Assembly (NCBI GenBank): GCA_004431415.1 | Contig: QPMI01000453.1 | Coordinates: 496,001-560,000 of the forward strand | Origin: Cyanophora paradoxa CCMP329 | Lineage: Eukaryota; Plantae; Glaucophyta | Direction: 5' to 3' | Length of the DNA stretch: 64,000 bases | Shown: one piece after another, positions 630 to 53,767 of the stretch | Numbering within the stretch: the stretch's first letter is position 1 | Layout of the letters: the number at the start of each line of letters is the position of its first letter | The notes under the pieces: model-generated | Database searches by the model: none | What the model was told of the DNA's origin: nothing | What the model saw: the letters and a program-made list of their open reading frames with translations, nothing else | Made by a program: the position numbers and the translations under genes

Positions 630-7100
<6,471 letters not shown>

Positions 7101-18727: not shown

Positions 18728-21700
18728 ATGCGACACAATATATATAGCATGCGAATGCGGAAGTGTCGGATCCTGCAACTGGCTGTTGGAGCGCGCAGGC
18801 AGCGCAGGCAGAGCTGTCATTACCACATCTATGCATCTGGTCGATGCCAGACATCGGGTTGCTTGCTTCTGCTCTTCTGCACCGTCCTGGCGTTAACGAT
18901 CAGCTACTGCCAATCGCAAGGTCAGGCAGAACGACCGCTCGGACGTCGACTCGTGAAAGCGGCGCAATCCCCTGGGCCCGCGAAGCTGATTATGCTAGCG
19001 CCGTCGCATGTACATGTACACGGCGTCTGTATTCACTTTACTGATCGCATTCATGGACAGGTTTCTCACGGCTGACTGTGTCGCCACCTCCATCCGATGC
19101 CTTTGCGCTTGGTGGAATCATCACGTCCGATCCACGTGGCGTCATATGCGGTTTGCAGTTGAAAATCTAAAGACACTTGTACGCACACTAAACGATACCA
19201 ATCGGCCGCGGGCCTGCAGATCAAGGCCAATCTGCAGCGGACCCCATTTTCCGAGGTTCGGATTAATTTCATGTGAACGTGGACAGCAGCCGATGTCTTG
19301 CATATGGTCATTGGAATATCTAACTCGTGATTGGTCGCAGATCTGGATCCGAGTGGAACGGCGGAGTGCGAGCTCCACTGGATGTGTGGAGACCCCGCTT
19401 TCTGCGGCAGCATTCGGCTCGCCCTAATTGGGGGCCCGAATCTGTACACGGACGACGTTCGACTCTCCCCGGGTGCGTTACGTTGATCGGCTGTCCTTCT
19501 CGAGGGCGCCGGCCGTCCCACATCAGTTCATATCGAAGTGCAGGGGCGTACGATGATCGCCCAATTCGTGCCCGGATCGTGGATTCAGACCCTGCATTTC
19601 CGGTGACCTAGCTGTATCATACGCATATCTCACGCTGCGCTGTGCTGCACTGATCCACACGCACCCCGCAATCGCAAACACAGGGAGTCGTCTATCACAT
19701 CTACCGGTAAGATTTACCCGGCTTATCGCAACGGACTGCTCTATTTCGGTCTTCGAATCGTGATCAGGTTCACCGTCAATCACACTTCAGCCCTCAACTT
19801 ATCGCTGGGATTGACGCGCGACTTCGCGGTTCTCCACATGCCTGACGCCACGGCGCTGAATCCGGCCCCAACGCTCACGCTCGCCACAATGAATGGCGTG
19901 GGCTTCAACTTCACGCTCCACTTCTACCCCGGCGGGAAGAACGCTAGCATTGACAACGTACGGCTCCAGGGCGCCTCCGTGGTCGCTGGTTCGCAGCCGG
20001 ATAGAATCAAGCAAGCTCTAGATCTTGATCGGTTTCTGTTTATTTACCGGCGCCGGCACGGCGTGCATTTCACAGATGCGGTCGATCCTGCAAGGCTCGA
20101 TTTGCATCCCTCGGTTTGCTGCTTCCAGTTCGAATTCGTTCCTTCTCGATTCGTTCTGATGAGAGCGCGCTCGATCGACTCAGGTGCGGGCCTTCAACGC
20201 CAGCAATCCCGGGCCGTACCGCATGTACACGGGAATCAGTGCGTCGCGAACTTTACGAAGCAAGCGAGCAGCGATCTCACCCGCTATAGCTAAATTTATA
20301 CGAACCTAGAGTTTGGGCGCGGGTGCGTTGACGGGCGCTTTTGATTTGCGCAGATCGAACCGCGGAAGGGAATGTCACATACTCTTCGGCGATGCTCTCC
20401 ATTGATCGGGAAAATGCTCTTTCTGAGTACCGCGTCAAGCACCGGCCGCTCAGACTCCAGTCCGATGGCCAGCCCTACGCGTTTGAATACGCGAGAGGAA
20501 CGGACTACAGCCGGACGTGCGCCTGAAAACCCTTCACAGCGAACTGCAGCTGGCCATCCAGGCGTTTAGAACCTCAATGCATGTATATATATGCCTAAGC
20601 AACTAGCTGTCTGTGCGCAGGTCGGGCCCGTGGTACAACGTGACGCAAGTCTTCCTCGAAAACTCGGACTTCGCCTCAGACGGGTACGTCCGCGATCTGA
20701 TCGCCAAGCTTAAGTGATGCAAAGCAAATCGAAGGCATTAATTTCTTTCTTCGCACAGATTTGAGTTCGTGATTGAGACGCGGAGCGGCAACCAGAAGAA
20801 CGTGAGCGTGTACACAGTGCACGTCTTTCGTGTACTTGTACCCGCCGGCGGAGTGGACATGCGGGCCTTCACGCCGGTCCTGGTCGCCGAGCATCTCGCG
20901 TACCCCTTCACAATGTCTTCGACCGCGGACTATTTTCGCGTCTGGATGCAAGTCAACTCGAGCGCCCAGAGCACTTGGACGCCCTTGAAAAGTCCCGAAG
21001 GGAATTACCTCTGGGGTCACAATAGAGGATTCAAACAGTACGATTTCGTGTACAAGGCTTCGGACGGGGCACGCGTGCTGAATTCGAATCTCCGTTGCAA
21101 GCTCCGTTCACTGAATAATTATAATCGATCACATGCGAGCGCAGTTTGGAACCAGAACGATAATCGTGGATATGCTCCTCCCCAACGTGCGCGGGGACTT
21201 TTGTTATAATTATGCCCCAAGCTTAGACCGCCGTTGCAAAACGACGAGCTAATTGTATAAAACTTCACGATGGATCCGCGCGCAGGCTCTCTATCCGAGG
21301 CGCGTTCACGGATGGCATCGCTACCCTTCCTTGCACGTGTTCGACCCTATTCAAACTCATACTTTCGCAGCGTCCAGGCGGTCGTGAAAGGCTACAACTA
21401 CACTGCGTGGACCTCCGACGAGCGGCCCATGCGCATCCTGAAAGCTGGGTTGGCGGGGCTGAACTTTTTTATGGCCCCGGGCAGCCCAACTTTCGACAGG
21501 GAAGACTTCGAAGGTTAGCTGTATATCTAAGCCTTCCAACTGAATTCACTTACCGCCACCGTTAACGTAAAGTAACTGTAACGTAACCACGATTTGTCGA
21601 ACCCAGTTACGGTCGTCGCTCCAGCTGGCTCCACCGCAGACGTCGCGGATCTATTGGCCGGCGTTCAAGTGAACACTCCTACGAATGACGCAGGAGTCGC

Positions 21701-24700
21701 CCTTACCCCGCCGGTCCGATTTGTCGGCCTCTCGACGACCTGGGCGTTTTCGGTCCCGGTCACCGTGGAGATTAAGTTCTCCAGCCGTGTCTACAAATTC
21801 TCCCCCGAAAACTCTTTTGGCGCGTTCGAGATGTACGTCTTCGATGCTTTGGGCGACTGCGTGCTCGTGGGGGACAAAATGGCCTGGAACAACACGGGCG
21901 TAAGCAATTCTTTGATTTCCCGTTACCGTCAGTTAACCGTTTATCTGAAGCTGGCTGATCTGAAATTCGCATAATATGCAGTTCGCTTATTGCGAAGTCA
22001 AGCCGAGGATTGCGACATCGGCCGATGTTCTCCCGTCCGACGCCATGTAGCCCCCGTCCTCGCCACCCTGCTCACGCCAGGGCGCTTCGTCAACGTGAAA
22101 CTCTGCGCAGAGTCAGCACCACAACCCCGGAGCTGGGCTACTTTGCAGCTCCAGTTTACATTCCCTCCTCGCGCGCCTACCGGTGGTACTTCTCCGGCAC
22201 AGCCGGAGGATATGCGCTTTTGAGAATCAGCTGGGCTCCGGGCCGTATGCACGTCTCCAAACCATCCAGCGCAATCGCCAAATCGAAAGGCGGCGTTCCG
22301 ATTTTAAAGGGCGTTCTCAGCTGCCCTGAACGTTTGGCGCGAAACGCCTACGGTCCATGCATCCTCAAAGGGGATTATGCTGACATTCTCTTGGAGGCAG
22401 CAATGCTTGCGCCAGAAAGACACTGGTCAGGCGCCAACTTTCAAGCGGTTGCCGGAGCCGCTAACACCTTTAGCTTCTTCGCAAGTGAGATCGAGGCAAG
22501 CTTAAGCACACCTGATCATGATTTTCAGCACGCAAACGCTGATCGCCTCCCCAAAACTGGACAGCTACAATCGGGAACGGCGGAGAATGTCAAGGTGTAC
22601 TGGAGCAACTACTGGGCTTCAAATTATGGTGTTGAGGGCGAATTGAATCCAGCGGCGCGGGCTTCTGTGAAGGCGAGTTCGTTCTTGATAACAATAAATA
22701 TTTGCCAATTGTCAGCCAAAGTACATGCGGCATTCTTTTAAATTTGCGATTTGGCTCCACAGATTGTAGACATCGATACTTCTGCAAGCTTCTGTGCCCT
22801 CGCTGTGGATCCCACTGGCCTTTCCTCGACAATGGTCGGACGGTTTTGCCAGATATATATGATGAAAGAGGAATATCTCGTAACTGTGGGTCCGCATTCA
22901 TGCACGCAGCGCGGCGTGTGCTCGCTCGTCTCGGCGCGTGACGTCACGGGAGCGAGGGGTCCCCTCTCTAAAGACGATTTCTCTTACAACGGAACTTTCC
23001 CCTTTCAATACCGGACGTACTCGGAGCCTTCCGTGTCGGCAGAAAACACCTCGGTTCGCCTCCGATTTTAAATTTCCTGCATACGTCGCCGAAATTGGGC
23101 GATGTGTGCTGTAAAATATGTCCACGTATTGACTGGCATCTGCGTCTCCAGTACGATATCGTCGTCGAGTCGCGCGGCGACTTTGAGCCTGGCTGGTCGA
23201 TCAGCTTCTTCTGGTCGGACGCCCTTGGGACGCAGCCAGTCCCGTTGAGACCTGCCTTCACGGCTGTTTTTCCCGAGGTGCTTATCGGGCACCTCATGAC
23301 AACACTCGTGCGGTTTGGTTCACTCGTACGGACGCGTGCGCAGTTTAAGCAAGCAAATATGAGATGCAAATTCCATGCATTTTCGATGCCAGGCGTAAGA
23401 TCGTCCTTTCTCCTGGCTTAGTTTGCCTCGGAACACTTCTGAGTTTTTCGCGCGCACGACAGACCGGCATTCCAACGTATTCGTGCTCGATCTGGCCGGA
23501 ACCATCGAGCCCAGTCGATCTTTCTAACCTGCCAGCGCTGACGGTGGAGCCGGCTGGCGCCGGCACCGTGTCGGCTACTGCGCTGAAGACCTGCTCCGCT
23601 GACTGCCCGAATGCAGCCGACGACTCGACACTCTTCTGCTCAGGCCCTTGCTCTTCAGGAGCTATAGCTACGTTCATGTCCTTTTCCTTCACTCCCACTC
23701 GTTCGGCGAATGTCTCGAGCACCGGCGGGGCCCTGTTGCGCCTCCCTTACGACTTCAATCTGATCCACTACTGGGATAATACCCTAGCGTCCGTCGCGAG
23801 GGTCCTCATCTCCTTCCTCCGTGCGCGTTCTTTTCCGAAAGGCTGCGCTGCCTAAGTTGGTTGCTACTTATAACTCTCCGCCCCACTGTTTGCATTTTAT
23901 ACTCGCAGACGTTCAAGTAAGTTGCAACACAATGAGGCGTGCCCCTTTGTTGTGTTCATTCTCGGTTCTGCTGTTGCATACAGTATGCTGAGCCATTAGC
24001 ATTGGAGCAGAATCCACGCAACCGGCAGCGCGACCTGCACATTGACGCCGGCAGCCGATTCGTGCGCATCCAGTCTCTTCATTTTTACTCGCGTGCGGAC
24101 AAATTCATCGTGATTTTACGTGCGCAGCGGCCCGATTCCGCAAAATGCCGCGGATCTCTTCACAATAACGTCGGCCGACACAACAGCACTCACCGTCGGC
24201 CCCATCACCGTCAATTCCGACGGATTGAAGGTCGGACTTCTTGAATTGCAAACATTTGCCACACAAGGCAGTTTATCGTCCCGCTTACGCTCGCTGCAGG
24301 CGGAGTTCAAGGTGACTGCGGGGAGCCTCGCTGCCTATACAACTGGCAAGCAAGTCACTGTGTCCTACGCCTCGGCGATTGGAGGGGGGAATGTCGTCGG
24401 CTCGCCGCTGTCCTTTGACATTATTGTCTCGACCATCTCGTGCACGACTGCATCACTCGTGCTGCTGGCGGATGCCCCAATGCACACGGAGTGCACGAGC
24501 AGCCCTTCTGGTGGCACCCCCGCCATCACAGTCGCCGACATGGACGCTGCCGTCGGCAAAGAGCCCTTCTCAACGTACTCGGACATCGCGCCCGGTGGGA
24601 GCGGGGTGACGTTTAGAGCTTACCCGACACGCGCCGGCTATGATCGCCCCGTGTTTGCTCCCTTCATCTCGGGAGGCGGTCCTTCTGTTGCCGTGGAAGT

Positions 24701-27700
24701 CACAGGCGAGCGCATGATCGACTCATGGCCTCTTGCGCCAACGCGTCTTTGATTGTTCCGGATTTTCGACAGGGGTTAATGACTTCAAGTGCACACCCGC
24801 TCGCGCCCCACCGGGACAAGTCGTCCAGTGCACAGCCGAAAAGGGCGATGGTGCATGCCATGATGTGACGTTAAACTTCTTTATTTCGGCGGGCATTGAT
24901 TATTGACTTGCAAGTGTCCGGATAGGACTGCCGAATTTGGATCCTGCGTTGTTCTCCGCGATCGCTTCCGCTGGCTCCGTCTCCTCGGCCCTCTCCGCCA
25001 CAGCAAGCGGGGGCCTCACCTTCTCCTTTACGACTGCTTTCGGAGGGGCGAGCGGGCCGGAAGTGGCGATTGTCTACGTGCAGAACAATGCCAAAGCTGC
25101 CAAGACATTCGTTGCTGTGGTTCGCGCCCAGACCAGATGTCTGCAATAGCAAGCGGCGGTTTCTGGAAACATGCACGTGCATCTTATTCCCTCCTGCGCA
25201 GGTCTCGGCAACCTTGTCGTGCACATGCAATCAGGCGGGGCTGAGCCCCTCGGATTGCCGCATACGAATGAAAAACGCGTTTGTCTGCACCAGTGCGCTT
25301 TCCGCCGGCTTCTTGCTCGGCTTTCTGTGACTGATGAGCCTCGCAGTCATAAAAGGAACGCACTCTGCTGATTTAATTCCGTCTGACGTCACGCTGGGCC
25401 CTTTGATTATGGAGGACGGAACGCCACACAGCGTAGGCATCCCGGTCCGTCTCAGCTCATTTATTTGCATCGAAGGCACTCGAAAGTCATTGAAGGTTTC
25501 AAAACGTTACGCAGCGCATTGCCAAAAGATCGGCAGTCACCGCTGCCGCCAATGGCGGACTCCAGTTTTCCACTGAAGCAGCAGATTTCGCCATATCCAA
25601 GGGCAAGGCAGTGAATTTTACTGTCTCGTTGCTTGGCAATCCTCTTGCGGACTCGCCGCTCCGCGTCACTGTTCTCGGCGGTAAGATCACCTTTGCTTTT
25701 CAAAGTAGCTATATAGGCGCTCGCTGTAACATAATTCTAAGTTGTTTCGAAATTCGATTCGACTTTTCAGATGTTTTGCTGGATTGCCCGCCAAGAATTG
25801 CAGCTACCGCCACAGGGGCTTTCTACTGTTATATCGAGACCGACGGCTCGAGTCTGCGACCTGAAGATGTTGTGCTGACCGGCCTAAGCACGAACTTCTC
25901 TCGCCGATCCCTTCTTCAATCAACTGGCATTACAGTTGGCTCGCTGGAAGCCGATGGGGAAACACACCTGCGCTTCAGTGTCGCATCGCAGGCCACACCG
26001 CTAGTTCCATCGGCGCTCTTTCATGTTCGTTTTGCTTCAAGCGTTCTCTCCCCTGGGGCGCCCGAGCTCCCGGTGTTGGGCTCCCCTTCAAATATATCAG
26101 TCATTGGTTCGCACGCGAGTTCTTGTTGTCCAATTTGAGCTTCGTAGCAAATCTTGTCCTGCAAATTCATCACTGCCTTGCAGCTGCTCGGGTGCAATGC
26201 GACAGAACCGTCTTGGTGGTGCGAATAATATGTTCGTATATCAAGTATGATGAGGCACCTCGCCCTCATTTTGTGCAGGCCCGGACGCGCTTGGTGTGCG
26301 ATGTAACTGGTACAACATCGGGAGCTCCGTTGGAGACAACAGATTTCCTGTGCGACTCTGCTCCCTAAAGCTTCAGGACACCTCATTTGCTAAATGTTGC
26401 CCTTCTTTAGATTCGCTAATGCTCAAGATGCGCGATACGAGGACTACTCAGTTACAAGGGTCTCAGATTATTTGGTGAAACACTTATTTTATGTCACTCC
26501 TTAATTCAAATTCGAACGTCTTTGACAGATCAAACACATTATATTCGGACCCGCGACTGGAGGCACAACCCATCAACTATTTGCATACTACGCGGTCTCA
26601 TGGACAAAATTCTCCACGGCCCGCGTCAATGTCGACAACTCACCGATGTCGCTATCGGTCGTTTCCGGCAGACTTGAGTGCAATAAATCGCGCGCTTATT
26701 TCGGTGCATAGTAGTTCCTCGCTTCAGATATATATCACCATTCCTAACATAAGCATGGCGTGTGCGCATGCAGGCGACAACGTAGAGTGCTGGGTGCAGA
26801 ATGGTGCCACTGTTCTTCGTTTTCGTCGCCTAAATATTCCCGTACGTGTGCAAACGCCGTCCGGGGTCTCGGCAGAAGCCGGCGGCCCGACGCTGCAAGC
26901 GTCGTATTTCACCACGTCGTACTACTCGTCTTTGAGGGTGACTATGTTTCTTTACCTTCGCATGCGTCCGCTCTGAAACGGCTCACATACTTTCAGCGCT
27001 TGAGTACGGACGACACCCAGAAATGCCTCGGACCAAACACACTCGGAGGCGGGACGTTCTATCTCGGGCGAAGCTGCAACGGCGGAGCATCCGGAGCATC
27101 CTCGTTCGAAGGTCGCTCTCCCAGCATCTCCGGCTGTTTTGGTCCCCGTTGGAAATCTGATCACGGGTCGGGCCCGGTTAGGCGCGACGCCTCGATTTAC
27201 CTTGACACAGAACGCGGCTCCCGGGGGCAGGACCAATATCGCTACTATAACGGTTGGAAGCCCTAAGCGAATTGCAGTTACAGTCATAGCCGTGGGGTGG
27301 AGCGCCGTGGTTGCGGGCCCGGATGTGGACACGGTGCGCTTTTCTAATGTGCATTTGTAGTCGAGCGACATCTATAATTCTATTCCCTCCGTCATGATCA
27401 GGTCTGGGCGGTGCCGCTCACATTCAACATATCAGTGCTGAAAGGTATGCGGACTGTGTCTAGATCGATATCGTTCTCTTTGCACGCACAAAGTGCTTCT
27501 TCGCAGGTCACAAGTACAATTTCGAGTGTAGGCCAGTGGTACGCCAAAGTAAGCATGGCGCCAATAAACGCTGATCCTTTTTGTATATCCTGCAGCCGCG
27601 GGAAAAATGCTGCAATCTCGATGTCGATCTGGCAAGAAGGCGCAACTGGCTTAATTCGATCTATAACCACACTTGCACCCTGCGAAAAGACACGATATTC

Positions 27701-30700
27701 GTTACAACCAGCGACAACTTAAATGCCGGTGGCCTCTCTGCGGCCGTGACGAGTCCCCCTACTCTCTCGGAAAGTGTCTCAGACTTTGTGATGAGCGACT
27801 TTGACTGGGCGGCTGGAGCGGTGCCGTGCAACCCGACAGCTGCAGCAACGTTCACGGCACCAGCTGCGGGGATGCTCGTTCTTCCGGACGCTGCCGACGC
27901 AGAGAGCTCGCGCTCCCCTCCCACGGTCCGCATGCGCAGAGGCTGTCGTGTTTAGCGAGTGCTCTCAGCTATTCTATCTATTTACAACCGTGGTTGAAAT
28001 GTCGCTTTATTTTTGCAGTTCGTTATACGGCCGCTTGCAGCCAACGCCTACAGATTCTGCATCCGGCCGAAAGCGTCCTTGTACCCGGTAATAACCACGG
28101 CTGCGGCGGCTTTCGATTCCACTATATTGTACACGATCTATGACGCAAAACCCGGAAGTACCGCTACATTACCTTGCGCAAATGCGACATTCGATTTGGT
28201 TGTGGGCTACAATAGAGGCGTACGCGCCCGTATTTTAGTTGCGAATCTTCGGCAGAACTAATTCCTCAACGCAGGGCTGCTACATGTACAGGCAAGCTAC
28301 AACATACAGTCTGATGGAGAGAGACTTCGACTGGATTGGGGGGGAAACAGACGCGGCCAAACTTTCGGCAGCGAATTCGAACGGAGAAACTCTTGAAAAT
28401 AATAAGCAAATTCAAATGGTACGTGTGCAAAACTGGTCATACATATGCACGTCGAGAGCGAAACGCCCCCGCGCTTTAATACATACATTCAGACCGGAAA
28501 CAAGGGATCGTACAAGTACGAGAAACTCACGGTCTCTCAGTGCATTATGTAAGCGCCCATTTCTAATCACTGAACAATGTCCCGCATCAAAGGTCGGGTT
28601 TCCTGGCCCGGATGGCACGTCTCTCGGAAAAGTCCTTTGGTGCTCTCGCGATAGATCATAGAGAAAATACTTTTCTAACCCCTATCGCAGGGAGGGATGG
28701 GCGGTCAACAGTGTTCTGGAATACAGAACTTATTGCTTCATGAGGGGCTCGCCTGTGATGTATAATTCGAAAAACTTCAGAGTAGGTGGTGCGCAGAAGA
28801 GCGCTGCGGAATGCTTTCCTGAAAATGCTTGACGGGAGATACCGTCACGGCGTGCAGCTGGCGCAAAATTGTCATGCTATCTGGCACAGCAAAACGAATC
28901 GCCCGTCCTTCCTCGTGGCCAGATCGTCGGCCCCATCAAAGCGACACCGGCGGCGTTCGAGGGGAATATTACGGAGCTGCAGCCAGACTCTCCAGACATA
29001 ATGCGATACCCCCCAGACGCACCGTGCCGCGACATGCCAGGGCAGACGTACCCCATCATCAGTGCCATCTCCTGCACAGAGACCGCTTATCTGTCAAACA
29101 CTCCCTGGTTCAAAATGGTGAACTGCACCTATTCGGCCATCACGGAGACAGCAGCCTACACATGCAGAAACAGCACGCAGTACTACAGAAACTCGACAGT
29201 CTTGAATATCCCGTTCTTCTGCGAGAACAACACGGTAACCACTTGCTGCTCAACGTATCAGACGCCGTCCGGTTGCTACACACGATTCAGCTTTGAGTGT
29301 GTTTCGATATTATATTCGGCCTTGCTCAGGGCTTCAAATTGTGTGTAACATTTGAACGCTCGTATCAGGTATCAGGCATTGGATAATCCGACCAAGGCAG
29401 AAAACGTGATTCGCTTCGTTTACAACACTACAAACGCAAAATTCAGTGATACCTTCAAGGTAAGCTCTAGCATCGATATCGACTCCCCCCCTAGGAAGCT
29501 TTACATACGCAACTAGCCGCTTACCGCTTGCATCGCTCCTCCTCATCATGAATTTCCATTACGCCTTTAATTGATTGCGCCGGCCGGCGTTGAAATTGTG
29601 CATATCCATCGCAGACCGATGGTGCAAACGACGTAAGCCCGGAACTCTCGACTTTTTGTAATCCAGTCCATGAATGCGGTTTATGATCAGGTTACTTTCA
29701 GCATAGTCGCGGCCCAATCCTGGGGCTGCTATCCGACGGTTATAGCTGCGTGCGTCCCTTGGGAACCTAATCAGCTTTTTTCACGGATCTCGCCTGTTCA
29801 ACTTCGTCTAATTGAGTTTGCACAGGCGTTCAAATTTCTATGCAGCGTGCTGGGTGCGTGCTGACAAAAGCGGTCCCAAGCCGGCAAAACAAGCTTAAGT
29901 GGCGGCGCAAGCTTCAATTAATATCCTCAGCGCAGGTTCGGAAAAGTGCAATCAGCTCTCTACTGAAAACTAACGACGTAATCCTGGTTTCGTGCGCCTA
30001 GCTCCAGTTGAAGTTACCATTTCGTCATATGGTTCTGCGCGCTCACTCGGCTTGCAGAAACAATACCGACATTATAAGCCTTCCGGGCCCTACAGCCTCC
30101 GAATCGACGCATACACAATTCAATTACTTAAGATGGAACCACGCTGGACAGAACGCGGTTGTCTGGTCCATTCGCGCGAATCCGAATTCATGGCAGACGG
30201 GCAGCGTACGAATCGATTTCAAATACGCCAGCGATCTTTCCACGTTCGCGTCGATCAATATGAAGGTTGTCAGCGGGGCGCTCAGCACGCCCAGGGCAGG
30301 CGTCCGCATTCCCGTCGGCGAGACCGTCACTTTCTACATGGTTCCTTATGGAAATTCAGACCCGGACAGCCTGGATCTCTCCTCGTACACTAACCCCCTG
30401 ATGGGCGTAAAGAATGCTGCTGGTCTGGTCGAGCGCGCGGAAGAATACGCAACGCTGTCGGCTCTGGGGAGCCTCGAAACGCGAACACCCCCTTCCGATT
30501 ACACTCTATACCCTGGCGTCCCGGTCAAGTGCACGAGTTTTGAGATGAAGGGTACAGTCGTCATGGGTGCGGAGATTTATTATCACACATGCGGAGATTT
30601 AATATCACACCGGACTCGCAATCGCGATCTTACCACGCAGAGCAGGAGCGGAAGTTGTGCAGCACGTTCAGCTCATGTACTCGTACAAAGTCTGCATCCA

Positions 30701-42700: not shown

Positions 42701-45700
42701 CCTGGTGCCTCCGGCAGGCTCTGCACCACTCCTCGCGGGCGACTTCAGGGATGTCGGGCGCCTCCTGCCGTCGGACCCGGACACTGGAGGCACAGGAAGC
42801 CCTGCTGGTTCAAGCATGAGCGAGGTCTTTGTTGCATGGAACGGAGACGTCGGCGTCGCGTCTTTGCAGCTGCATGAAGCGGGCGCGTGGTGGCTGCGGC
42901 CGCAGTGGAGCTTGGCCGTGGGCGGTGGCTTCGTCCGGCCTGTCCCCGTAGCAGTTGTGGAGGCCAGCATCAACTGCCCACCGCGCGTCCGCGAGGGCAT
43001 CGATACGCTGTGCGTCTTGGTTCCGTCACCCGGCGGGCCTGCGCTTGACACAGTGGACTTTCTTCCGGGGACGGTTGTGCCGGCGGACGCTGCTCGCGTG
43101 TTGCCGCTGGCGCTTCATGCACAGCAGCCGGGGAACGTGTCGCTCGGCCTCCTGAACGTCAGCCTGCACCTGGGTGGCGTGAACGTGTCGGTCCACTACA
43201 ACGCGTCCATCAACCTCGCGTCGCCAGAAACCACGCTGTCGCCGTCGACGATACATGTGGTTGGGGCAGTTCTCGCGACAAACATGACCCGCATTGCTGT
43301 TCGTGCACCCGTTGGAATTACGTTCGCGCGAAAGAATCTGTCGGAGCCTCTTCGGCCCTCGGATTGCGAGAGAGTCTGGCTTCAGAACCCGCAAAACCAA
43401 AGCAGCCTGTCACAATCGCCATCCTCATTTTCCCTTTTAACTTCGAAGTCCGGCGAGGCCCTCACTTTCCTCGTGCACCCACCGCTTGCAGGGCACCCCG
43501 TCCGTTTGTGGACAAACTACAGCAACAGCATAGGCGGCGGCCTTGTCAACGAGATCAATATCACTGTCGTGGAAGCTGCAGTTGCCTGCTCGCCTCTCCG
43601 CATCGTCATTGGCGCCGCCATCGTCTGCAATGTATCCCGCACGGCGGCGTCCCCAGCCCTCGTGGCCTCCGACCTGACGCTCTCCGTGTCGCCGCCAACA
43701 GCGGGCACCATCGGCCAGCTCATCGCTGTCGGCGGTCAGCCGCACCAGTTCGAGTTCACTTTCGTGCCTTCCGAGCCAGTTCTCGGCAGCATCCACGTCC
43801 GCTATGCTCCGCTCATAGATGAAACGGAGCAGCACATCGGTGGCAGTCCCGTGCAGTTCACCTCGCTGAACGCGACACTGCATTGCAACCCGCTGCGCCG
43901 CCACGTAGGCGCTGTGTCGTTTTGCAACGTAACGAAGTTCGGCGCGGGCGGCGACCTTCTCACGTCCGATTTCGCCGCACTGGCCTCGCCTGCAGGCGTC
44001 GCGGGCGTCATCGGACCTCACCCGACCCTCAACGGTTCCCTTGCTTTCAACTTCACCGCGACCACCCCGACGGGGCCCGGTGGCGAGCGCATCCAGGTGA
44101 TTCGCTGCAGCCTCATGCTCTGCAAAGCGACTCTCTGACACGGATCTCGTGCCCCTGCAGATCCAGTGGCACCCGTCACTCACCGTTGGGCTGCTGAATG
44201 CGACTGTCGTCAAGAGGCTATTCAACACCCTTGTTGTTATCAACGCGACCCTGCACTGCCCGCCTCGCGTCAGCGTGGCAGCGAACTTCTCATGCGTCCT
44301 GGTGCCTCCAGCGGGATCTGCACCACTCCTCGCGGGCGACTTTGCCGACGTAGCGCGCCTCCCGCCCTCGGACCCAGACACTGGAGGCATAGGGCGCCCA
44401 GCTGGGACAAGCATGAGTGAGTTCTTTGCCGCATGGAACGGAGACGTCGGCGTCGCGTCTTTGCAGCTGCATGAAGCGGGCGCGTGGTGGCTGCGGCCGC
44501 AGTGGAGCTTGGCCGTGGGCGGTGGCTTCGTCCGGCCTGCCTCTGTTGTTGTAGTGGGTGCCAGATTGAGCTGCCCGTCGCGCGTCCGCGAGGGCATCGA
44601 CACGCTGTGCGTCTTGGTTCCGTCACCCGGCGGGCCTGCGCTCGACACAGCGGACCTTCTTCCGGGGACGGTCGTGCCGGCGGACGCTGCTCGCGTGCTG
44701 CCGCTGGCGCTTCATGCACAGCAGCCGGGGAACGTGTCGCTCGGCCTCAAGAACGTCAGCCTGCACCTGGGTGGCGTGAACGTGTCGGTCCGCTACAACG
44801 CGTCCATCAACCTCGCGTCGCCAGAAACCACGCTGTCGCCGTCGACGATACATGTGGTTGGGGCAGTTCTCGCGACAAACATGACCCGCATTGCTGTTCG
44901 TGCACCCGTTGGAATTACGTTCGCGCGAAAGAATCTGTCGGAGCCTCTTCGGCCCTCGGATTGCGAGAGAGTCTGGCTTCAGAACCCGCAAAACCAAAGC
45001 AGCCTGTCACAATCGCCATCCTCATTTTCCCTTTTAACTTCGAAGTCCGGCGAGGCCCTCACTTTCCTCGTGCACCCACCGCTTGCAGGGCACCCCGTCC
45101 GTTTGTGGACAAACTACAGCAACAGCATAGGCGGCGGCCTTGTCAACGAGATCAATATCACTGTCGTGGAAGCTGCAGTTGCCTGCTCGCCTCTCCGCAT
45201 CGTCATTGGCGCCGCCATCGTCTGCAATGTATCCCGCACGGCGGCGTCCCCAGCCCTCGTGGCCTCCGACCTGACGCTCGCTGTGTCACCGCCAACAGCG
45301 GGCACCATCGGCCAGCTCATCGCTGTCAGCGGTCAGCCGCACCAGTTCGAGTTCACTTTCGTGCCTTCCGAGCCAGCTCTCGGCAGCATCCACGTCCGCT
45401 ATGCTCCGCTCATAGATGCGACGGAGCAGCACATCGGTGGCAGCCCCGTGCAGTTCACCTCGCTGAACGCGACACTGCATTGCAACCCGCTGCGCCGCCA
45501 CGTAGGCGCTGTGTCGTTCTGCAACGTGACGAAGTTCGACGCGGGCGGCGACCTCCTCACGTCCGATTTCGCCGCACTGGCCTCGCCTGCAGGGGTCGCG
45601 GGCGTCATCGGACCTCACCCGACCCTCAACGGTTCCCTTGCTTTCAACTTCACCGCGACCACCCCGACGGGGCCCAGTGGCGAGCGCATCCAGGTGATTC

Positions 45701-48700
45701 GCAGCAGCCTCATGCTCTGCAAAGCGGGTTTCCTGACACGGCTCTTGTGCCCCTGCAGATCCAGTGGCACCCGTCACTCACCGTTGGGCTGCTGAATGCA
45801 ATGGTCGTCGAGAGGCTATTCAACACCCTTGTTGTGATCAACGCTACCCTGCACTGCCCGCCTCGCGTCGGCGTGGCAGCGAACTTCTCGTGCGTCCTGG
45901 TGCCTCCGGCGGGATCTGCACCACTCCTCGCGGGCGACTTTGTGGACGTAGCGCGCCTCCCGCCCTCGGACCCAGACACTGGAGGCATAGGGCGCCCTGC
46001 TGGCATAAGTATGAGCGAGGTCTTTGTTGCATGGAACGGAGACGTCGGCGTCGCGTCTTTGCAGCTGCATGAAGCGGGCGCATGGTGGCTGCGGCCGCAG
46101 TGGAGCTTGGCCGTGGGTGGTGGCTTCGTTCGGTCTGCCCCTGTCAACGTAATGGGTGCGCGCAAACCCCAAATGACTTTCCAAAATAAATGTTTACAAT
46201 CTACCAATGCACGAATGATCGTTACTGTGCATGCATGCGCAATGCATATGGCTTCGAATTTATTTCTGGTTTTCTGCAGGCGCACGTCTGTCGTGCCCAT
46301 CTCGGAGCATCTCTGTGCTAGGAACTGTTCGGTGCTCCATCTCAACTCTCGTCGGTTCTTCGGAAGTTGTTCTCTCCGACATCGACTCGACTGCATTTAT
46401 TCTACCGAACCCTTCTTCTGGCGATGCTCCGTACGCGGAGCCATCAGCAGTACAGGCTAAGAACGCCAACGGAACGGACATCTACATTGACGTTAGAGGC
46501 TTGCGTGTCACGGAAGAGCTTGCTGACCAAGGGGACAACTTGAAGCTGTTCGTTCGCTACGCAACGCGCGATAGCATCCGTAACAGTCCAGCGCCTTTCA
46601 TCACGGATGCCCCTCAGCCTCTGCAGGTGGGCGCAAGCGCATGCACAGCGTGCACGTGCACCTAGCTGGTTGGAATGACTAAGCGCGCGGCATTCAGGTC
46701 CAAGGCTCGATGGCTATCATTTCGTCCGGAGTTCTCAGCAATGGTAATCCTCGTTTGCGTTACGTGCTGGCATCGCGAGTGCTCATACCTATGCAGGCAT
46801 CCAATTGGCAGTCACTTTCAACTACCCCGCGCGCCGGGAGAGCGGCACGCTACCAGCGACCTTCTACCTTACCGACGACTCCGCGGCCAGGCTGGGAACC
46901 GGTCAGTCGCTTCTTTGCCATGCGGTGCTCTCGCCGCTTTCGAACAAGCTAGTGCAGGAGCGACCGCGTTCTGGTCTGGGCCGGACACACTTGTGTTCTC
47001 GATAATGCCCGATTCGACGGTCGTCGGCGGAGACATTCTTCGCTTCCGCATTCCCATTTACCGCGGCGACACAACCGATGTCGAGCGCTTCCGGGGATTT
47101 TTCGAGGTGCACAGGCTTTCTGTTCGATTTTCATCTATCCTTTATAATAACATCGCTCAATCATCACTTATGATCAGGTCGACGTCGAGAACTTCACACC
47201 CGTCATCTCGGCCACGTTTCCTGAAGTCGTCGCTGTTTGTCGGAAGGCAAAGCTCGTTGCGTTTCCTGTTTCTGGAACGGGTCGCCGGCCCCTCACCTAC
47301 CACTGGAGCTGCGACGACGAAGCGACGTGCAAGTCGCTTGCGCAGCGCGGAATCTCCGTCAATTCAACGCGAAACGACACAATCATTGTACCCGAGGATG
47401 CTCTGAACACGCGCAACTACAAAATGTCGGTGTACGCGCGGAACTTCTTGGGCGCGAAATCAAACGTCGTTCCCATCAGATTCTTCAAGTCGGGTCTATT
47501 TGTGCGCATGCGTGATTGAAACAGGCACTAGTAGAAGTGTGAGTTTTGTTCACATTGGCGCCAGGCACCATTCTTGGAGGTCGATGGGGGCACGACCATC
47601 TTCTCAAAGGCGTCGACTCTGACGACGATTAAAGTCGTCGTTCAGGTTCGCCAGCTGTACTTTTGGAGTCTCGCAAAAGCTGACAGTCTGGCAGCGAACA
47701 ACTTGCAATAAAGAGCTCGACGATCCCGGAGCATGTGCGACCCTGTCTCGCGCGCACGGTTTCAAGAATACAAAACTAATTCCGTGCTATGATGCAGTCA
47801 TAATCCTTCGGGAATTTCAGTGGCTCCGCGCGTCGGACATGGATATTCAGTGGCACCTGCCAGACGCGGCATTGCAATTTTTACCCGTCAGTGTTGAACT
47901 GGACCGCCCAACCCTGCTCATTGTGCGAAGCCACCGCCCCTGCTGGTTTAAATTAACGCTTGCAAACGTTGACTGAGACCGCTTCGAATTCACAGCCAAA
48001 GAATACGCTGCAGCCGAACAGCAAGTTCCTAATGAGCATGACCGCCCGCGATTTGCTGCAACAAGGGGCGCCAACGGTGTGTGAAATTTATTAATGCATG
48101 GATTAATGCATTCTCTTACGTGTACTTGTTCTGTTTCAGGCATCCATCAACGTGACTCTGGTGATTCTCAGCGAACCACTGAGCGCTCGCATTGCTGGCG
48201 GGAATCGTGTCGTTTCTCCCACGCGCCCCTTTGTTCTGGACGCGAGCCTAAGCCGCGACCCGGACTACGCAGCCTCCAGCGACGACGGCAGCGGCGCCTC
48301 GCTAGTCAGCAGTACCCTGCGGTACCAGTGGGAGCTCCGAAAAGCGACGACTGCTGCCGGGGCCACCTCGCCGGAGGGGAGCGCTGTCGGGCCAATCGCG
48401 ACAATCGAATCAAACCACCCAATCGTGACCATCGATCCAAAGGAGCTCGGCCTCGAAGCGGGCACTGCATACACAGCCACGCTGAATCTTCTCTCTGCTC
48501 GCTTCCGCCGCGGCGAGCCGGAGGGCAACGCGACGGACAGTGCGTCTGTAACTATCACTCTCGCCTCGGAGAGCGTCCCATCAGTTTTCATTACGGTGTG
48601 CATCGTGACTGTGTGCAATTTCAGTTCCCAATATATACTCTAACTTTGTTTCCAGTCGACGTTCCCTGTGGACCCAACACACGCCATCGAGGAGCTTGGT

Positions 48701-51700
48701 CTGAGGGTAATCAAATCGAATTCCTCTCAGTACGGGGCGATCTTGAACTTTTCCAATACTGCGTCTGCAGGTTCGCTGCGAGGCGTCTCAGCCAGACAGG
48801 CCCGAAAGCTCCGCAAACGAACTCGTCTTTGTTTGGTCAAGTGCTGACGACGACACATCTATAAGCAACATCTCCAGGTCTACCGTGCCACATGATCGGA
48901 CTAGATCGTGTTCTATTAAGGCTTGCACTTTATGCAGGCTTGCCGTGCGGACTTCGGCGAACTCTTCCACCCTCATAATCGACAGAAAGCAGCCATTTGC
49001 CTCGGCCTTTGCGCTTGACCGCCTTTACCGGTGCTTCTGAGTGTTTGTCGTGTAGGCAGTATTGTACACCCTGCAGATACTTATCGCAATCTCCATCAGG
49101 ATTCGGTGCAGCGTGTACACCAAGGCCCAGGGGCCCGAACTGAGCGGTGAACCTCACCTGCAGCCTGCGTATGTCAAAAGATGGTTAACGCGCTCGGGCT
49201 CCTTTCTCGCAGCTTTCCAAGACACATCGATTCGTTTCATTTCAGGACCGATTCCGGGCGAGTGCACTGTCAACCCGCCGAAAGGCATCGCTCTACAGAC
49301 GCAGGCGCGGCATTTCACATTGGTTTTGTTGCGAAAATAACCAAGGAATGGAGGCTCACGGATCACTGCCACACAGTTCGTTGTCACATGCACGAACTGG
49401 ATGTCGCAGTACACATCCGACCCGCTACTGTATAAGCTTCAGGTACGCTATAGCGTCTCTAAAATGCAGCTGGTTCCGATTGCAACGGCTAACCGAACCA
49501 TCTACCTAGATTATCCCGCCTGCGAGTCGGCCAGGCGTGTTTGTGACACAGAGCCAGCCCAACTCTGCGCCGGTGGTGCGCGCCGTGCTTCCCCGCGGAG
49601 AGGGGCAAGACCGCATCGTTCGCCTGGTCCTCGTCGTTCAGGATGCCTTCAACGCATCGACCTGTGAGAGCCACCCCTTTTCGAGACGAATTTGAATCGG
49701 GGAGACTGAAATGAATGCGGCAGCATATTTCTTGAACGCAACTTCCGATTTGGAGACAAGCGTGGAGAATCTCGACAAACTGCAGCTGAAATCATCCGTG
49801 CTTGACATTCTCGGCATTGGGACTAGATCGCTTGCCGTGACCGGCGGCGATGGCGACCTGGAGGCATCGCTGGCGACTATCGGCAACACCGCCATAACGA
49901 TCTCTGGTACTTATAATCTCAGAACGCAGTCGCTCGCACCTTGCGATTGTCTAACGCGTTGTCGTAGACATTCTGGAGCAGTACATCGGAGCAGGCACGG
50001 AAACAGCCTATCAACCGGCCTCGCATCTGGATCAGACTCCAGAAGCCACGAAGTGCGCTATTGTAATCGATTGCTTTAATGATTCAAACAAAGTGCGACG
50101 GTATGTCGCTCACACCGCATTTAGGAAAATAGCGGACACACTGGCGCCAATGCTCCAGGTTATCAACTGTGCGTGTACAGACGCACTCTTTCGGGGCGTT
50201 TCCAATGAGGGGTCGGTGACATATTTCGAGCTCTCACGTGTGCATCCCGCATGCGCAGCCGTTGGGTCCAACACCCGCTCGTCGAAGTTCCAGGTTGTTC
50301 AAGCCGTCTCAGTAGGCACAGTGCTAACCCGCGTCGTCACTCGGTTCGTTGCGCTTCTATTTCCCTTCGCGATACAATCGCGCGTCTGCTGATCCATGTG
50401 CACATAGCACCGGTTCGTCGGAGCTTCAAACCGGACTGGCGGACGCGATGCACTCGTTGTACAACGCTTTAAATCCTTGCGACGATTCCGCTGCTGTAAA
50501 CGAGCTACTCATTGCCGGAGCCGGTGCGTGAAGGCCCGATCCGTGTATACATATTGCGCCCATCAGAGCGCTGCGCAGATACTTTCGTTGGCTCGTCGTG
50601 GTGGCTTGCCCAAAATTCGAATGGGACGGACACTTCGCAGTTTGCCGACTCAGTGATGCGCATGTTCAAGACGTTCACTTCGAAGTCGGTAAAATGCGGC
50701 TCTTGCGGCGCGGCCCCGTCTGTCAGCTCGGGGCTCCGTGTCGCTATCTTCACGGGCCAAGTATGCCACAACCGGGAGAACGAGGGAGAATTCAACGTCG
50801 GCGGGTCCCGCAAAGAGACCGCGGGCCTCGTCGTGCCTCCCGAGCTGCAGAAGCTTTCCAGCTCTCTGAATGGCACGGAGGGCACGCAGCTAACGGTCTA
50901 CGTGTACCCGCGCGGCCCGTACCCCGAAGCGACGGCTGGGGCTATCAACGGGACTAAAACCTACGTGAAGTAGTGCGTCATGAATTCTCGAGGGCGCAGG
51001 AAGCGAGACGAGCGCTTACACTGAATGGTCGCTCGCAGCAACGTGTCCAGCTACGTTATGGAGGTGGAAGTCCCGGGGCTCAAAGTTAAGAACCTTTCAG
51101 AGCCTATCACGGTTCGGCACTGTTTTCGATTCCAACACCGACATCGATAGAGAAGCATCCCCTGGCATGGTGTCTCGCTTCTGAATTGCGAGCGCAGTTC
51201 CAAATCCCCCTTCGCATGCCCAACGGAGAGCTCGGTGATCCCAAGCAGAAGCTCGAGCTCATCTACTACGACAAAATAAACAAAGTGTGGATTAACTGGT
51301 CTGCAGCTGTTCACGTCTGCAGTTCACTGAAGAAACAAACTCGCTCACGCATGTGGTCTCGCTGTTTTGCACGCGCAGCGGAAATGTCACGACGATACTG
51401 GACAAAGCCGTGATCACCGCCGTCGCTTCCTGCACCCATCTCACGCCGTTTGCGAGTGCGAGCTTAACGGGCTTCGCTTCTTGAGAACGTATTTTCTACT
51501 CGATGAATACCAATATGCTCGCAGTTGGCGTGGGGGAGGTTATCACCTTGGCAGATTCGACGGGGCAAGGTGCTGGAGGGCACGGTTCGGGCGTCAATCC
51601 GGTGGCGGTGGCTGTGCCTGTCGTACTCGGCGTCGTCGCATTGGTGCTGCTCGGCGTAGCAATCGCCTATGCAAAGGGCGTATTGGCGACGAAGGCATTG

Positions 51701-53767
51701 GCAGCGAAGACGGCTCCGGAGCCGGCGCCGATAGCGTATCCACCAGCCACACCCAGCGGTCTTGTGGCTTCTTCGCCGCTGGTTGTCACTGTTACACCTG
51801 GAGAAGCAGCTGCTGCCATGGCCAGCGCGGGCCCTCAAATAAGCGCTGTTTCCAGCGAAGCCCTTCCAGCCGCAGCTGCAGCACCGGCCGTGACGCCTAT
51901 CGTAAGCACCGGCCCGTGGATGGCGGGGGCTGTCGTGGGGGGCGCAGCCACGGGAGTCGCGGCCGCCGCAGTTGCGACCCCAGTAGTCGCTATTGCACCG
52001 TGGCTGTTCGCTGCGGCTATTCTTCCCTCTTACTACGTAATCCGGCGCAATGGGAAGGAGATTGGCAAGGTTCCCCGCACTCAGCACTCGTTTAAGATCA
52101 ATGACATGGAAGTGGACGGCAACGCTGTTTACGACGTTTACGCGGTGGATGCTGGCGGACTTTCTGGTCCCCCATCATACGCCCTTTCTGCGGGCATAGC
52201 TCTAAACGATACGACCGGTATTCACCTGACCGTTCGACCCACCCAAATCAACGGTGCCAGCGCCAAGCTACTTTGGAACACTCCCAAGGCGGCGTCCGAA
52301 GACGGCTGGTCCAAGTACGCAACGCATTCGCTGTTGACAAACACCTATACGATCATATAACATATCATCTGGTCTCGATTTGATTTCTCCCTGCAGCTAT
52401 GAGATTTCGATGAACGGAGTGCGCATCGCGTCGGTGCCAGTCGGCAAGCCGGATGATGATGGTGGGCTGAACACGTTTTTGATCGAAGATGTCCCTCGCA
52501 AAGCCGTGTTCCAGGTAATTACAACTTGTTCCACGCACACAGCATTCTAGATCTCAAGAAATTAATTGGGCTCTACAGGTCACGGTTATCGCTTCAATCT
52601 CTGATCCCTCTCCAATCAATGTATACATTGCCGCGAGTCGCGAAGTGGAGTTGGAACCCTACGACGAGAGCGAGGAGGACTACAGGGGCGACGAGGACGC
52701 TCCGAGACCGTCGGCGCCGGCCAACCTCGAGCTCGCGCTGAACAGAGTCGTGGAAGACAGGGATGACCCGAAGCGGGCCGCCTCCATTCTCACCTGGAAA
52801 TTCCCTATTCCTTCTCACTACGTAATCCGGCGCAACGGCGCTGACATTGGCGAAGTTCCCCGCACTCAACACGCGTTCAAGATTGATGACGTGCAGTTGG
52901 ACGGCAACGCCGTTTATGACGTGTACGCGGTGGACGCTGGCGGGCTTTCCGGCCCGCCGTCTTACGCCCTATCTGCGGGTGTTGCGTCTAGCGCGAGTGG
53001 CGGAATCCACCTTACGGTTCGTCCAACGCGCGTCAGCGGAACCAGCGCCAAGCTGCTGTGGAACACTCCCAAGGCGGCGTCCGAAGACCGCTGGACCAGG
53101 TGCTTGACGCTTCTCTTGGGATTTTCATCATCACGATTGCGACGCTCATGTGCATTTTAAATCCCGCAGCTTCGAGATATCGATGAACGGGAATCGCATA
53201 GCCAGTGTGCCCGTTGGCAGGCCGGGCGAGGCGCTCAACACGTTCTCGGTCGACAATATTGAAGTTCCTCCCCAAGCCGTATTCCAGGTTAGATCGATCC
53301 GTTCGGTTTCGTGAAGGCTTCTTAAGCATTCATGATACGTATACTGTTACGGGTACAGGTGATGGCGATCGCGTCTCTTTCGGGGCGAAACGCAGTCGCG
53401 TCGAGCCGCGCCGTTGAGCTGAAGCCATACGAGCGCGAGGAAGTGGACCTAGAGGAGGAGGAAGAGCAGGGCAAGGGAGAAGACGAGGCACCGGACCCCG
53501 CGGCGCCGGCCGACCCCGAGCTCGAGCTGAACAGAGTCGTGGAAGACGAGCTGGACCCCAGTTCGAAGCGTGCCTCTGTCTTTCTCACTTGGAAGCCGCC
53601 AGCCTCGTCCGCGACCGGCCGCGGCGCAACGGAATCATCTCCCTCTGACCATTCCCCAGACGCGCCGAACTTTGAGGTCATACAATATATTTAGAGCTAG
53701 CTATAAATTATTTGATGTCTATACAGACACGTTTAGTACACAGGTTCGCCCTACTGTAGACTCTTAA
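18728..53767 (+). CDS. Giant multi-exon cell-surface protein: signal peptide, PA14-like head, many Ig/filamin-like repeats, REJ, GAIN/GPS, TM, FnIII-like repeats (polycystin-1/adhesion-receptor-like)
   Basis: Co-oriented exons separated by short (about 60-110 nt) GT/GC-AG introns for 35 kb with no obvious intergenic gap. Hydrophobic leader GCLLLLFCTVLALTISYCQS near 18855-18918, abundant N-x-S/T sequons, and ordered C-terminal REJ, GPS and TM motifs. Single-gene continuity, exact start and final exon (stop at 53694 or 53767) are inferred. Confidence 0.72.
36611..46155 (+). repeat. Six tandem ~1.59-kb coding repeat units, each ~510 codons (five ~100-aa modules) plus a ~64-nt intron
   Basis: The intron GTGATTCGC...CCCTGCAG starts at 37731, 39322, 40912, 42500, 44097 and 45694 (spacing 1591, 1590, 1588, 1597, 1597). 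The translated ORFs are near-identical. Confidence 0.97.
47178..49650 (+). other. REJ (receptor for egg jelly)-like region of the giant gene
   Basis: GTGRRPLTYHWSC...SVYARNFLG; PLSARIAGGNRVV...FVLDASLSRDPD...LRYQWE; GPIPGECTVNPPKGIALQTQ|FVVTCTNWM...DPLLYKL. These match characteristic PKD1/REJ module motifs as I recall them. Confidence 0.82.
51198..51455 (+). other. GPS autoproteolysis motif at the end of a GAIN-like domain
   Basis: Two exons join to give YYDKINKVWINC-GNVTTILDKAVITAVASCTHLTPFA, with H-L-T codons at 51437-51445. It is preceded by VKNLSEPIT|FQIP, typical of GAIN-B strands. Confidence 0.85.
51602..51673 (+). other. Transmembrane helix of the giant protein
   Basis: VAVAVPVVLGVVALVLLGVAIAYA followed by Lys residues (KGVLATK), shortly after the GPS motif. 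Confidence 0.85.
52024..53430 (+). repeat. Duplicated FnIII-like domain block after the TM segment (two ~0.78-kb copies with matching introns)
   Basis: PSYYVIRRNGKEIGKVPRTQHSFKI...YDVYAVDAGGLSGPPSYALSAG...SAKLLWNTPKAASED at 52024-52315 recurs at about 52810-53100; YEISMNG/FEISMNG exons follow each copy. Confidence 0.75.

Follow-up and report, generated by a model that had tools for sequence, protein, structure and literature searches.

A giant predicted REJ protein of Cyanophora paradoxa with a filamin-like stalk, a GPS-like motif and a single membrane helix

A locus of the glaucophyte Cyanophora paradoxa CCMP329 raises the question of whether a single gene there encodes a giant relative of polycystin-1 that stops after one membrane helix and, if so, whether this protein could cut its own chain. 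The locus lies in a stretch of 64,000 nucleotides (contig QPMI01000453.1 of assembly GCA_004431415.1, positions 496,001 to 560,000 of the forward strand), hereafter called the window, in which positions are counted from the first letter. The window is GC-rich eukaryotic DNA, and its introns are short and of the GT-AG type. On the + strand it carries in succession a signal-like segment, a long row of immunoglobulin (Ig)-like modules, a REJ domain, the motif C-T-H-L-T-P-F, one transmembrane helix, an FN3-like tail and a stop codon. This is essentially the order (signal peptide, Ig-like stalk, REJ, cleavage motif, helix, FN3-like tail) that had been read in an original prediction made from the sequence alone. 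Taken as a whole, the locus is quite probably a single intron-rich gene of ~35 kb encoding a type I surface glycoprotein of ~6,000–7,500 residues, and the gene most likely belongs to a lineage-specific expansion of polycystin-1/REJ-like proteins in C. paradoxa.

The family assignment comes from the REJ region. The Pfam profile PF02010 matches 48152–48640 with an expectation value (E) of 3.7e-10 and 39.4 bits, above its curated cut-off of 25, which upholds the REJ domain of the original prediction; a weak colinear piece follows at 49113–49322 (15.7 bits, profile positions 302–332). Upstream of REJ, a PKD_4 hint at 47178–47501 (E 0.15) is not significant. When the full protein library was searched by phmmer with the REJ exon 48107–48640, 14 proteins were found at E<=1e-3, strong scores being restricted to EukProt models of C. 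paradoxa. One of these, tig00020685_g12976 (P0001), is a paralog fragment of 269 residues that is 71% identical. The other strong models are tig00020553_g10756 (P0003, 7,652 residues), tig00000405_g442 (P0004, 2,699 residues) and tig00020824_g14231 (P0005, 2,242 residues). The REJ domains of the paralogs reach 93–116 bits in Pfam, and tblastn places 46954–51592 of the window colinear with residues 6426–7473 of P0003, and likewise with P0004 and P0005.

P0003, P0004 and P0005 harbor 62, 14 and 11 copies, respectively, of the same stalk module as the present gene, then REJ and, after it, C-D-H-L-T-P-F and a single helix with the sequence V-P-V-V-L-G, so that this whole arrangement is shared among the C. 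paradoxa models. Their identity with the present gene is 29–35% over REJ and the adjoining GAIN-like region. They differ from it in having short tails devoid of FN3-like units and in being models without an N-terminus, whereas in the present gene H-L-T is preceded by T in place of D, and recent tandem units of 1.59 kb are found. The three public models begin inside the module array and have no signal peptide; they are probably truncated at their N-terminus.

The features of the locus are as follows, all on the + strand; the evidence used to place them is given in brackets.

18728, +: candidate start codon ATG, followed at 18860–18910 by a signal-peptide-like hydrophobic core (hydropathy scan)
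19600–24000, +: exons of an N-terminal head to which no family is assigned (G+C content at third codon positions, GC3; gene finder)
24006–36130, +: Ig-like modules, diverged and divided among many short exons (hidden Markov model, HMM; tblastn)
28890–29296, +: Cys-rich insert inside the module region (translation of the open reading frame, ORF)
36204–45758, +: six tandem units of five Ig-like modules each (repeat spacing, alignment)
45759–46626, +: partial seventh unit and last module (HMM matches at 45837–46046 and 46279–46506; exon model)
46698–47645, +: pre-REJ exons (colinear with residues 6426–6619 of P0003)
47821–49663, +: REJ domain exons (Pfam PF02010; colinear with the REJ regions of P0003, P0004 and P0005)
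49724–50523, +: GAIN-like region, helical part, whose exons the model covers incompletely (colinear with the paralog residues of a seven-helix bundle)
50567–51455, +: GAIN-like region, beta-rich part up to and including the GPS-like motif (aligned with P0003, P0004 and P0005)
51437–51445, +: H-L-T codons, with the predicted cut between L (51440–51442) and T (51443–51445) (sequence)
51456–51524, +: phase-1 intron of 69 nt, GTGCGA...CTCGCAG (sequence, gene finder)
51602–51673, +: transmembrane helix of 24 residues, then a Lys-rich stretch (hydropathy, insertion-energy sum)
51917–52024, +: Ala/Gly/Val-rich stretch, unlikely to be a second helix (hydropathy, insertion-energy sum)
51917–52195, 52217–52632, 52717–52980, 53002–53403 and 53506–53691, +: FN3-like units of the tail, in this order B', A, B, A and a truncated B
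52315–52396, 52515–52578, 53100–53169 and 53288–53358, +: introns of the tail (exon model)
53692–53694, +: stop codon TAG, beyond which the DNA becomes AT-rich and the GC skew reverses

The stalk deserves the description "very long" and "Ig-like" that the original prediction had given it. An HMM was built from the five modules (~100 residues each) that make up one tandem unit; iterated over all six-frame pieces, it finds at least 47 modules between 24006 and 46506, all of them on the + strand; the − strand gave two weak isolated matches. The diverged part at 24006–36130 accounts for 15 matches (E 1e-2 to 5e-20), and its modules also match those of P0004 and P0005 by tblastn. The fourth module of unit 5 (43563–43859) was folded with AlphaFold2 from an alignment of 32 modules taken from the present gene and three paralogs, giving a predicted local distance difference test (pLDDT) score of 93.9 and a predicted template modelling (TM) score of 0.84. 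In a Foldseek comparison of this model with PDB, filamin Ig repeats come first (2bp3_A, E 2e-4, TM-scores 0.65/0.70), with dozens more filamin repeats below. In the ESM Atlas, Big_1, Invasin_D3 and Filamin models are found at TM-scores of 0.69–0.75. The model thus confirms a predicted seven-strand Ig-like sandwich that is closest to filamin repeats, the similarity being at the level of the fold only. Pfam has no match for the modules, either with Filamin (PF00630) or with the PKD repeats (PF00801, PF18911), and a module profile found nothing among PDB sequences. The stalk is therefore Ig-like but not made of Pfam PKD repeats. The Cys-rich stretch at 28890–29296 interrupts the modules with about ten Cys in 130 residues and many N-x-S/T sequons; it drew a blank in Pfam and among PDB sequences.

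The tandem units are 1588–1598 bp long (508–511 codons), each with a conserved intron of 64–65 nt, and contain 16 N-glycosylation sequons and 9 Cys per 511-residue unit. They share 75–99.9% identity. Units 2 and 3 are 99.9% identical, with 2 base differences apart from a deletion, which indicates that the array was amplified or homogenised recently. The ratio of nonsynonymous to synonymous substitution rates (dN/dS) between units is 0.33–0.59, a range that, on sequence grounds, fits a translated frame under selection. The deletion affects 1 nt: at 40127–40131, the run of five C present in units 1, 2 and 4 is reduced to four in unit 3, and the frame of that unit is shifted. A homopolymer error in the long-read assembly is the probable cause, although the lesion may be real.

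Could the locus then be a silent or decaying pseudogene copy of an expanded family? The frameshift of unit 3 and the last FN3-like unit, which is both truncated and diverged, speak against an intact gene, and the copy might be decaying. Expression data speak the same way: no RNA run was found to contain the locus, the three matching runs being DNA-like and reading through introns, and a read check over 5,901 nt gave DNA-like contigs only, with no splice joints. Moreover, the searched protein library holds no model of the locus (full-library phmmer with the REJ exon). Against decay, the frameshift stems from a single base in a run of five C, and such errors are common in long-read assemblies. 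All the other units are open over their 508–511 codons with the dN/dS given above, the open path extends from 30 kb as far as the stop codon, and a single contig of 192 nt at 51626–51817 comes from one possible RNA run. A pseudogene appears unlikely.

Whether it is one gene depends on its upstream part. The segment at 18860–18910 is the only strongly hydrophobic + strand segment in a plausibly coding ORF upstream of 51.6 kb according to the hydropathy scan, and its insertion-energy sum, a rough estimate, is favourable. The signal peptide of the original prediction thus has a sole candidate, behind the ATG at 18728. The head ORFs (19600–24000) have a raised GC3 of 0.63–0.67, and the gene finder places + strand exons at 21429–24752, with the − strand nearly empty. 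The predicted lectin-like nature of this head is not supported, as ORFs from 18.7 to 24 kb matched no family, lectin included, in Pfam and among PDB sequences at E up to 1.

Continuity was followed with a home-made GT-AG gene finder whose codon and splice-site scores were trained on the same locus. This program mis-models several small exons and skips an exon near 51166–51260 and part of the 50.1-kb region, so that its output serves for continuity and not for annotation. Left unforced, it reads 30029–53694 as one open path of 36–41 exons and about 6,100 codons. With the start forced at 18728, it gives 57 exons and 7,532 codons; this forced model skips the signal segment, and its unreliable N-terminal part, with 18.7–30 kb weakly modelled, weighs against a single gene. 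The unforced program indeed splits the span into 21429–24752 and 30029–53694, the coding signal is weak across 25–30 kb, the head has no homology to the paralogs by tblastn, and the public paralog models are themselves fragments. All this would suit at least two genes, a separate one upstream in 18.7–30 kb and another, from near 30 kb, with modules, REJ and helix. However, a gene starting at 30029 would lack a signal peptide despite its glycosylated Cys-paired modules, REJ and outer juxtamembrane region. These parts need a signal peptide and the only signal-like segment is at 18.86 kb, which is the best argument for a single gene. In addition, module matches persist on the + strand at 24.0, 24.2, 25.8, 26.3 and 28.8 kb, no − strand gene was found in between, and the − strand has no comparable coding signal across the locus. 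A division into two or more genes is thus rather improbable, and the 18.7–30 kb part would belong to the same transcript as the modules, REJ and helix.

The second half of the question concerns cleavage. The motif C-T-H-L-T-P-F is encoded at 51431–51451 and its exon reads C-T-H-L-T-P-F-A to 51455, where the intron 51456–51524 splits the strand that follows the motif and joins the exon to I-G-V-G-E-V. This intron was picked by the gene finder with and without homology hints, and the spliced product across the junction aligns to uninterrupted paralog sequences. As a model, the in-frame joining of the two GPS exons and the neo-end TPFAIGVGEV given by the original prediction are correct. After splicing, the HL/T motif (the slash marking the predicted cut) and its hydrophobic strand are both present, as H-L-T-P-F-A-I-G-V-G. 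The sequence C-[DT]-H-L-T-P-F is invariant in four proteins (the present one, P0003, P0004 and P0005) that are ~30% identical, and 50 residues separate the motif from the helix in the present gene. Motif, position and context therefore fit a candidate GAIN/GPS site.

Several results weigh against this assignment. The Pfam GPS profile PF01825 remained unmatched even at E 10, with short and long cuts of the paralogs as well as with the GPS exon of the present gene; of the GPS claimed from the sequence, the intact H-L-T-x-F motif stands but a family match at E up to 10 does not. The canonical GPS consensus has two conserved disulfide pairs. Only one of them has counterparts here (W-x-x-C and C-x-H), the first and third GPS cysteines being absent from the present gene and its paralogs. 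The GAIN fold was approached through a proxy, the aligned paralog region A2, folded from a three-sequence alignment. Its mean pLDDT is 46.6, with a seven-helix bundle at 60–80 and a strand-rich second half at 22–43, the last two strands of which flank H-L-T. For this proxy, Foldseek returned nothing at E<=1e-3, the GAIN domain of BAI3 (4dlo_A) being found at rank 24 with E 0.18. VIA-align placed designed helical repeats first and the outer region of Gpr126 (6v55_A) at rank 15 with a Z of 10.6, which falls in the unspecific range of VIA-align for helical models. A profile of the GAIN-like region yielded chance matches only among PDB sequences. Word-index protein searches with the paralog GAIN region, the GPS end and a three-paralog profile returned the query itself or nothing. 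The language-model neighbours of the paralog post-REJ region are three PF01825 GPS clusters at 0.85–0.87, a lead only.

The HL/T sequence could accordingly be viewed as a conserved juxtamembrane motif that is not cleaved, the protein being an uncleaved adhesin or coat protein. The unmatched Pfam profile, the missing Cys pair and the low pLDDT of the paralog proxy (46.6) all agree with such a view. Furthermore, several animal GAIN proteins with near-consensus sites are uncleaved. Nevertheless, C-x-H-L-T-P-F is invariant across paralogs that are only ~30% identical, and the language-model neighbours are GPS families. In addition, the motif directly follows REJ and precedes the helix by 30–50 residues, a placement shared by every cleaved member of the PKD1 family described in PMC1934368. 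An uncleaved protein is thus a real possibility, though the less probable one, and a candidate cleavage site is the preferred reading.

Beyond the site, 51602–51673 is the only strong membrane helix on the + strand, with an insertion-energy sum of −1.24 on a rough scale; the V-P-V-V-L-G of the paralog helices recurs in it. The original prediction had counted one clear helix, perhaps two; the first stands, and a second at 51917–52024 is unlikely. The tail that follows has 577 residues, in which, according to a three-frame reading and the exon model, two kinds of ~90-residue units alternate with acidic linkers between them, about five units in all. Their sequence is FN3-like, with a W in strand B and the pattern Y-x-V-x-A-x-D-x-x-G-x-S. 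The language-model neighbours of 52645–53157 are fn3 and FN3-like Ig_J clusters at 0.92–0.93, the best ten all belonging to one clan. Searches of the tail units against Pfam and PDB sequences were blank, and the tentative nature of the FN3 call, which combines a language-model lead with motif reading, counts against the overall reading. By these two lines of evidence, the FnIII-like repeats announced after the helix are present as FN3-like units.

The announced lack of PLAT, 11-transmembrane (11-TM) and seven-transmembrane (7TM) parts after the GPS is also borne out. The tail ORFs have no PLAT/LH2, channel or 7TM match in Pfam (PLAT at E up to 1), the stop codon closes the frame at 53692–53694, and the + strand farther downstream shows no clustered membrane helices that could form an 11-TM part.

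The side of the membrane on which the tail lies depends on the number of helices. If 51917–52024 were a second membrane helix, the FN3-like tail would be outside the cell, an arrangement suggested by its mean hydropathy of ~1.9 over 19 residues, by the commonly extracellular location of FN3 domains and by the two helices of SpREJ2 (PMC1934368). Its insertion-energy sum is however +2.5, compared with −1.24 for the first helix, it contains two prolines, and its counterpart by alignment is the first half of the B units farther along the FN3-like tail. Moreover, the tail has 0 Cys and 1 sequon, as against 9 Cys and 16 sequons per stalk unit, and Lys follows the first helix, which favours a cytoplasmic tail. 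A second helix is therefore doubtful, and the FN3-like tail, judged from its composition, is probably cytoplasmic.

Sequencing runs gave two further observations on the locus. In DNA runs from 2012, the stretches 48054–48626, 49505–50293 and 50569–51223 are covered by an exact copy and by a second version that differs by ~1–4% and has an 18-nt insertion behind 51132, within a predicted intron. This second version may represent either another allele or a very recent duplication of the locus. In the tail, a low-depth short-read contig joins 52309 to 53166, skipping 856 bases; the ends of the skipped piece (TC..CC) are not those of an intron. The joint looks like either an assembly collapse between two tail repeats or a copy-number variant of the FN3-like tail.

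Around the gene, 3248–5754 is very G-rich DNA of low complexity, in which G occurs 55 times in a row and a G-rich unit of 13 nt occurs 17 times; it belongs to a region of 72% GC where long ORFs overlap on both strands. At 10821–10901, the repeats are C-rich. The ORFs tested in this G-rich/C-rich region were blank in Pfam, and nothing was found by Pfam on ten neighbouring ORFs or by Rfam on the whole window. Downstream, 53800–54400 is AT-richer (GC 0.45–0.48), the GC skew reverses at ~54 kb, and the longer ORFs beyond are on the − strand. Two convergent genes probably meet here.

Combined, these features allow the following model to be drawn. The outer part of the protein would be an extended glycosylated stalk. 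The HL/T site would be part of a GAIN-like fold, where the chain may be cut between L and T in the manner of polycystin-1 and SpREJ3. After the cut, the stalk would be held non-covalently to a stub starting with TPFAIGVGEV, and the FN3-like tail would link this stub to partners in the cytoplasm. As there is no channel, PLAT or 7TM part, any signalling would depend on the single helix together with the tail, or on a distinct partner protein. Self-cleavage, shedding and signalling by the stub are plausible conjectures. A much bolder and improbable extension is that the proteins form surface filaments of a few hundred nm on a self-cleaving REJ/GAIN base, with a cytoplasmic FN3-like chain by which the stub reports force or the loss of the stalk. 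If this were true, it would be a third type of output for GAIN-type mechanosensors, and the REJ-GAIN module would predate animals as a stand-alone device.

If the protein is expressed and cleaved, the REJ-plus-cleavage-site module of polycystin-1 would be placed in Archaeplastida in a simple one-helix form. It would offer a channel-free setting for asking what this module does alone, with an unusual output, the probably intracellular FN3-like tail. For annotation, a ~35-kb locus is missing from the searched protein library and the other public models of the family appear truncated. A literature search found no paper pairing Cyanophora with a REJ domain; papers on Cyanophora and polycystin look unrelated, mostly by title.

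Contrary to the original prediction, the architecture as such is not new: REJ and GPS with one helix and without PLAT or a channel were already published for SpREJ1, SpREJ8 and SpREJ9 of sea urchin (PMC1934368). In these proteins, REJ and GPS precede the first and only helix, whereas SpREJ2 has two helices. PLAT/LH2 follows the first helix in only half of the sea-urchin members, and the set of 11 helices with its channel-like last six is absent from SpREJ1, 2, 8 and 9 (PMC1934368). The present protein resembles SpREJ1, SpREJ8 and SpREJ9 in its REJ domain, its candidate GPS-like site upstream of the sole helix, the absence of the 11-TM channel part and its large glycosylated outer part. The sea-urchin proteins differ in their size of ~1,500 residues, their C-type lectin, EGF or PKD repeats and their short tails. 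In the C. paradoxa protein, which is ~5 times as long, filamin-like Ig modules number at least 47; it has no recognised lectin but has a 577-residue FN3-like tail, a GPS unrecognised by Pfam and a glaucophyte origin.

Human polycystin-1 (PKD1) shares with it the order signal peptide, Ig-like repeats, REJ, HL/T site and membrane. Compared with polycystin-1, the present protein has no leucine-rich repeats, WSC, C-type lectin, LDL-A or Pfam PKD repeats and no PLAT, 11-TM part or coiled coil, and its Ig-like modules are more like filamin repeats than PKD domains. Adhesion G-protein-coupled receptors and their single-helix isoforms (bioRxiv 10.1101/2023.01.11.521585) likewise have HL/T beside the membrane, with a hydrophobic strand following it. 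The present protein differs from them in having no 7TM part, in the REJ domain that precedes the site and in a GAIN fold that is only putative. In Ectocarpus, Esi0130_0068 (1,427 residues) has REJ, GPS and 6–7 predicted membrane helices (PMC4700764); it is alike as a REJ and GPS protein of a non-animal alga, and its 6–7 helices contrast with the single helix found here. What is distinctive in the C. paradoxa protein is thus its glaucophyte lineage, its size, its filamin-like modules and its short FN3-like tail.

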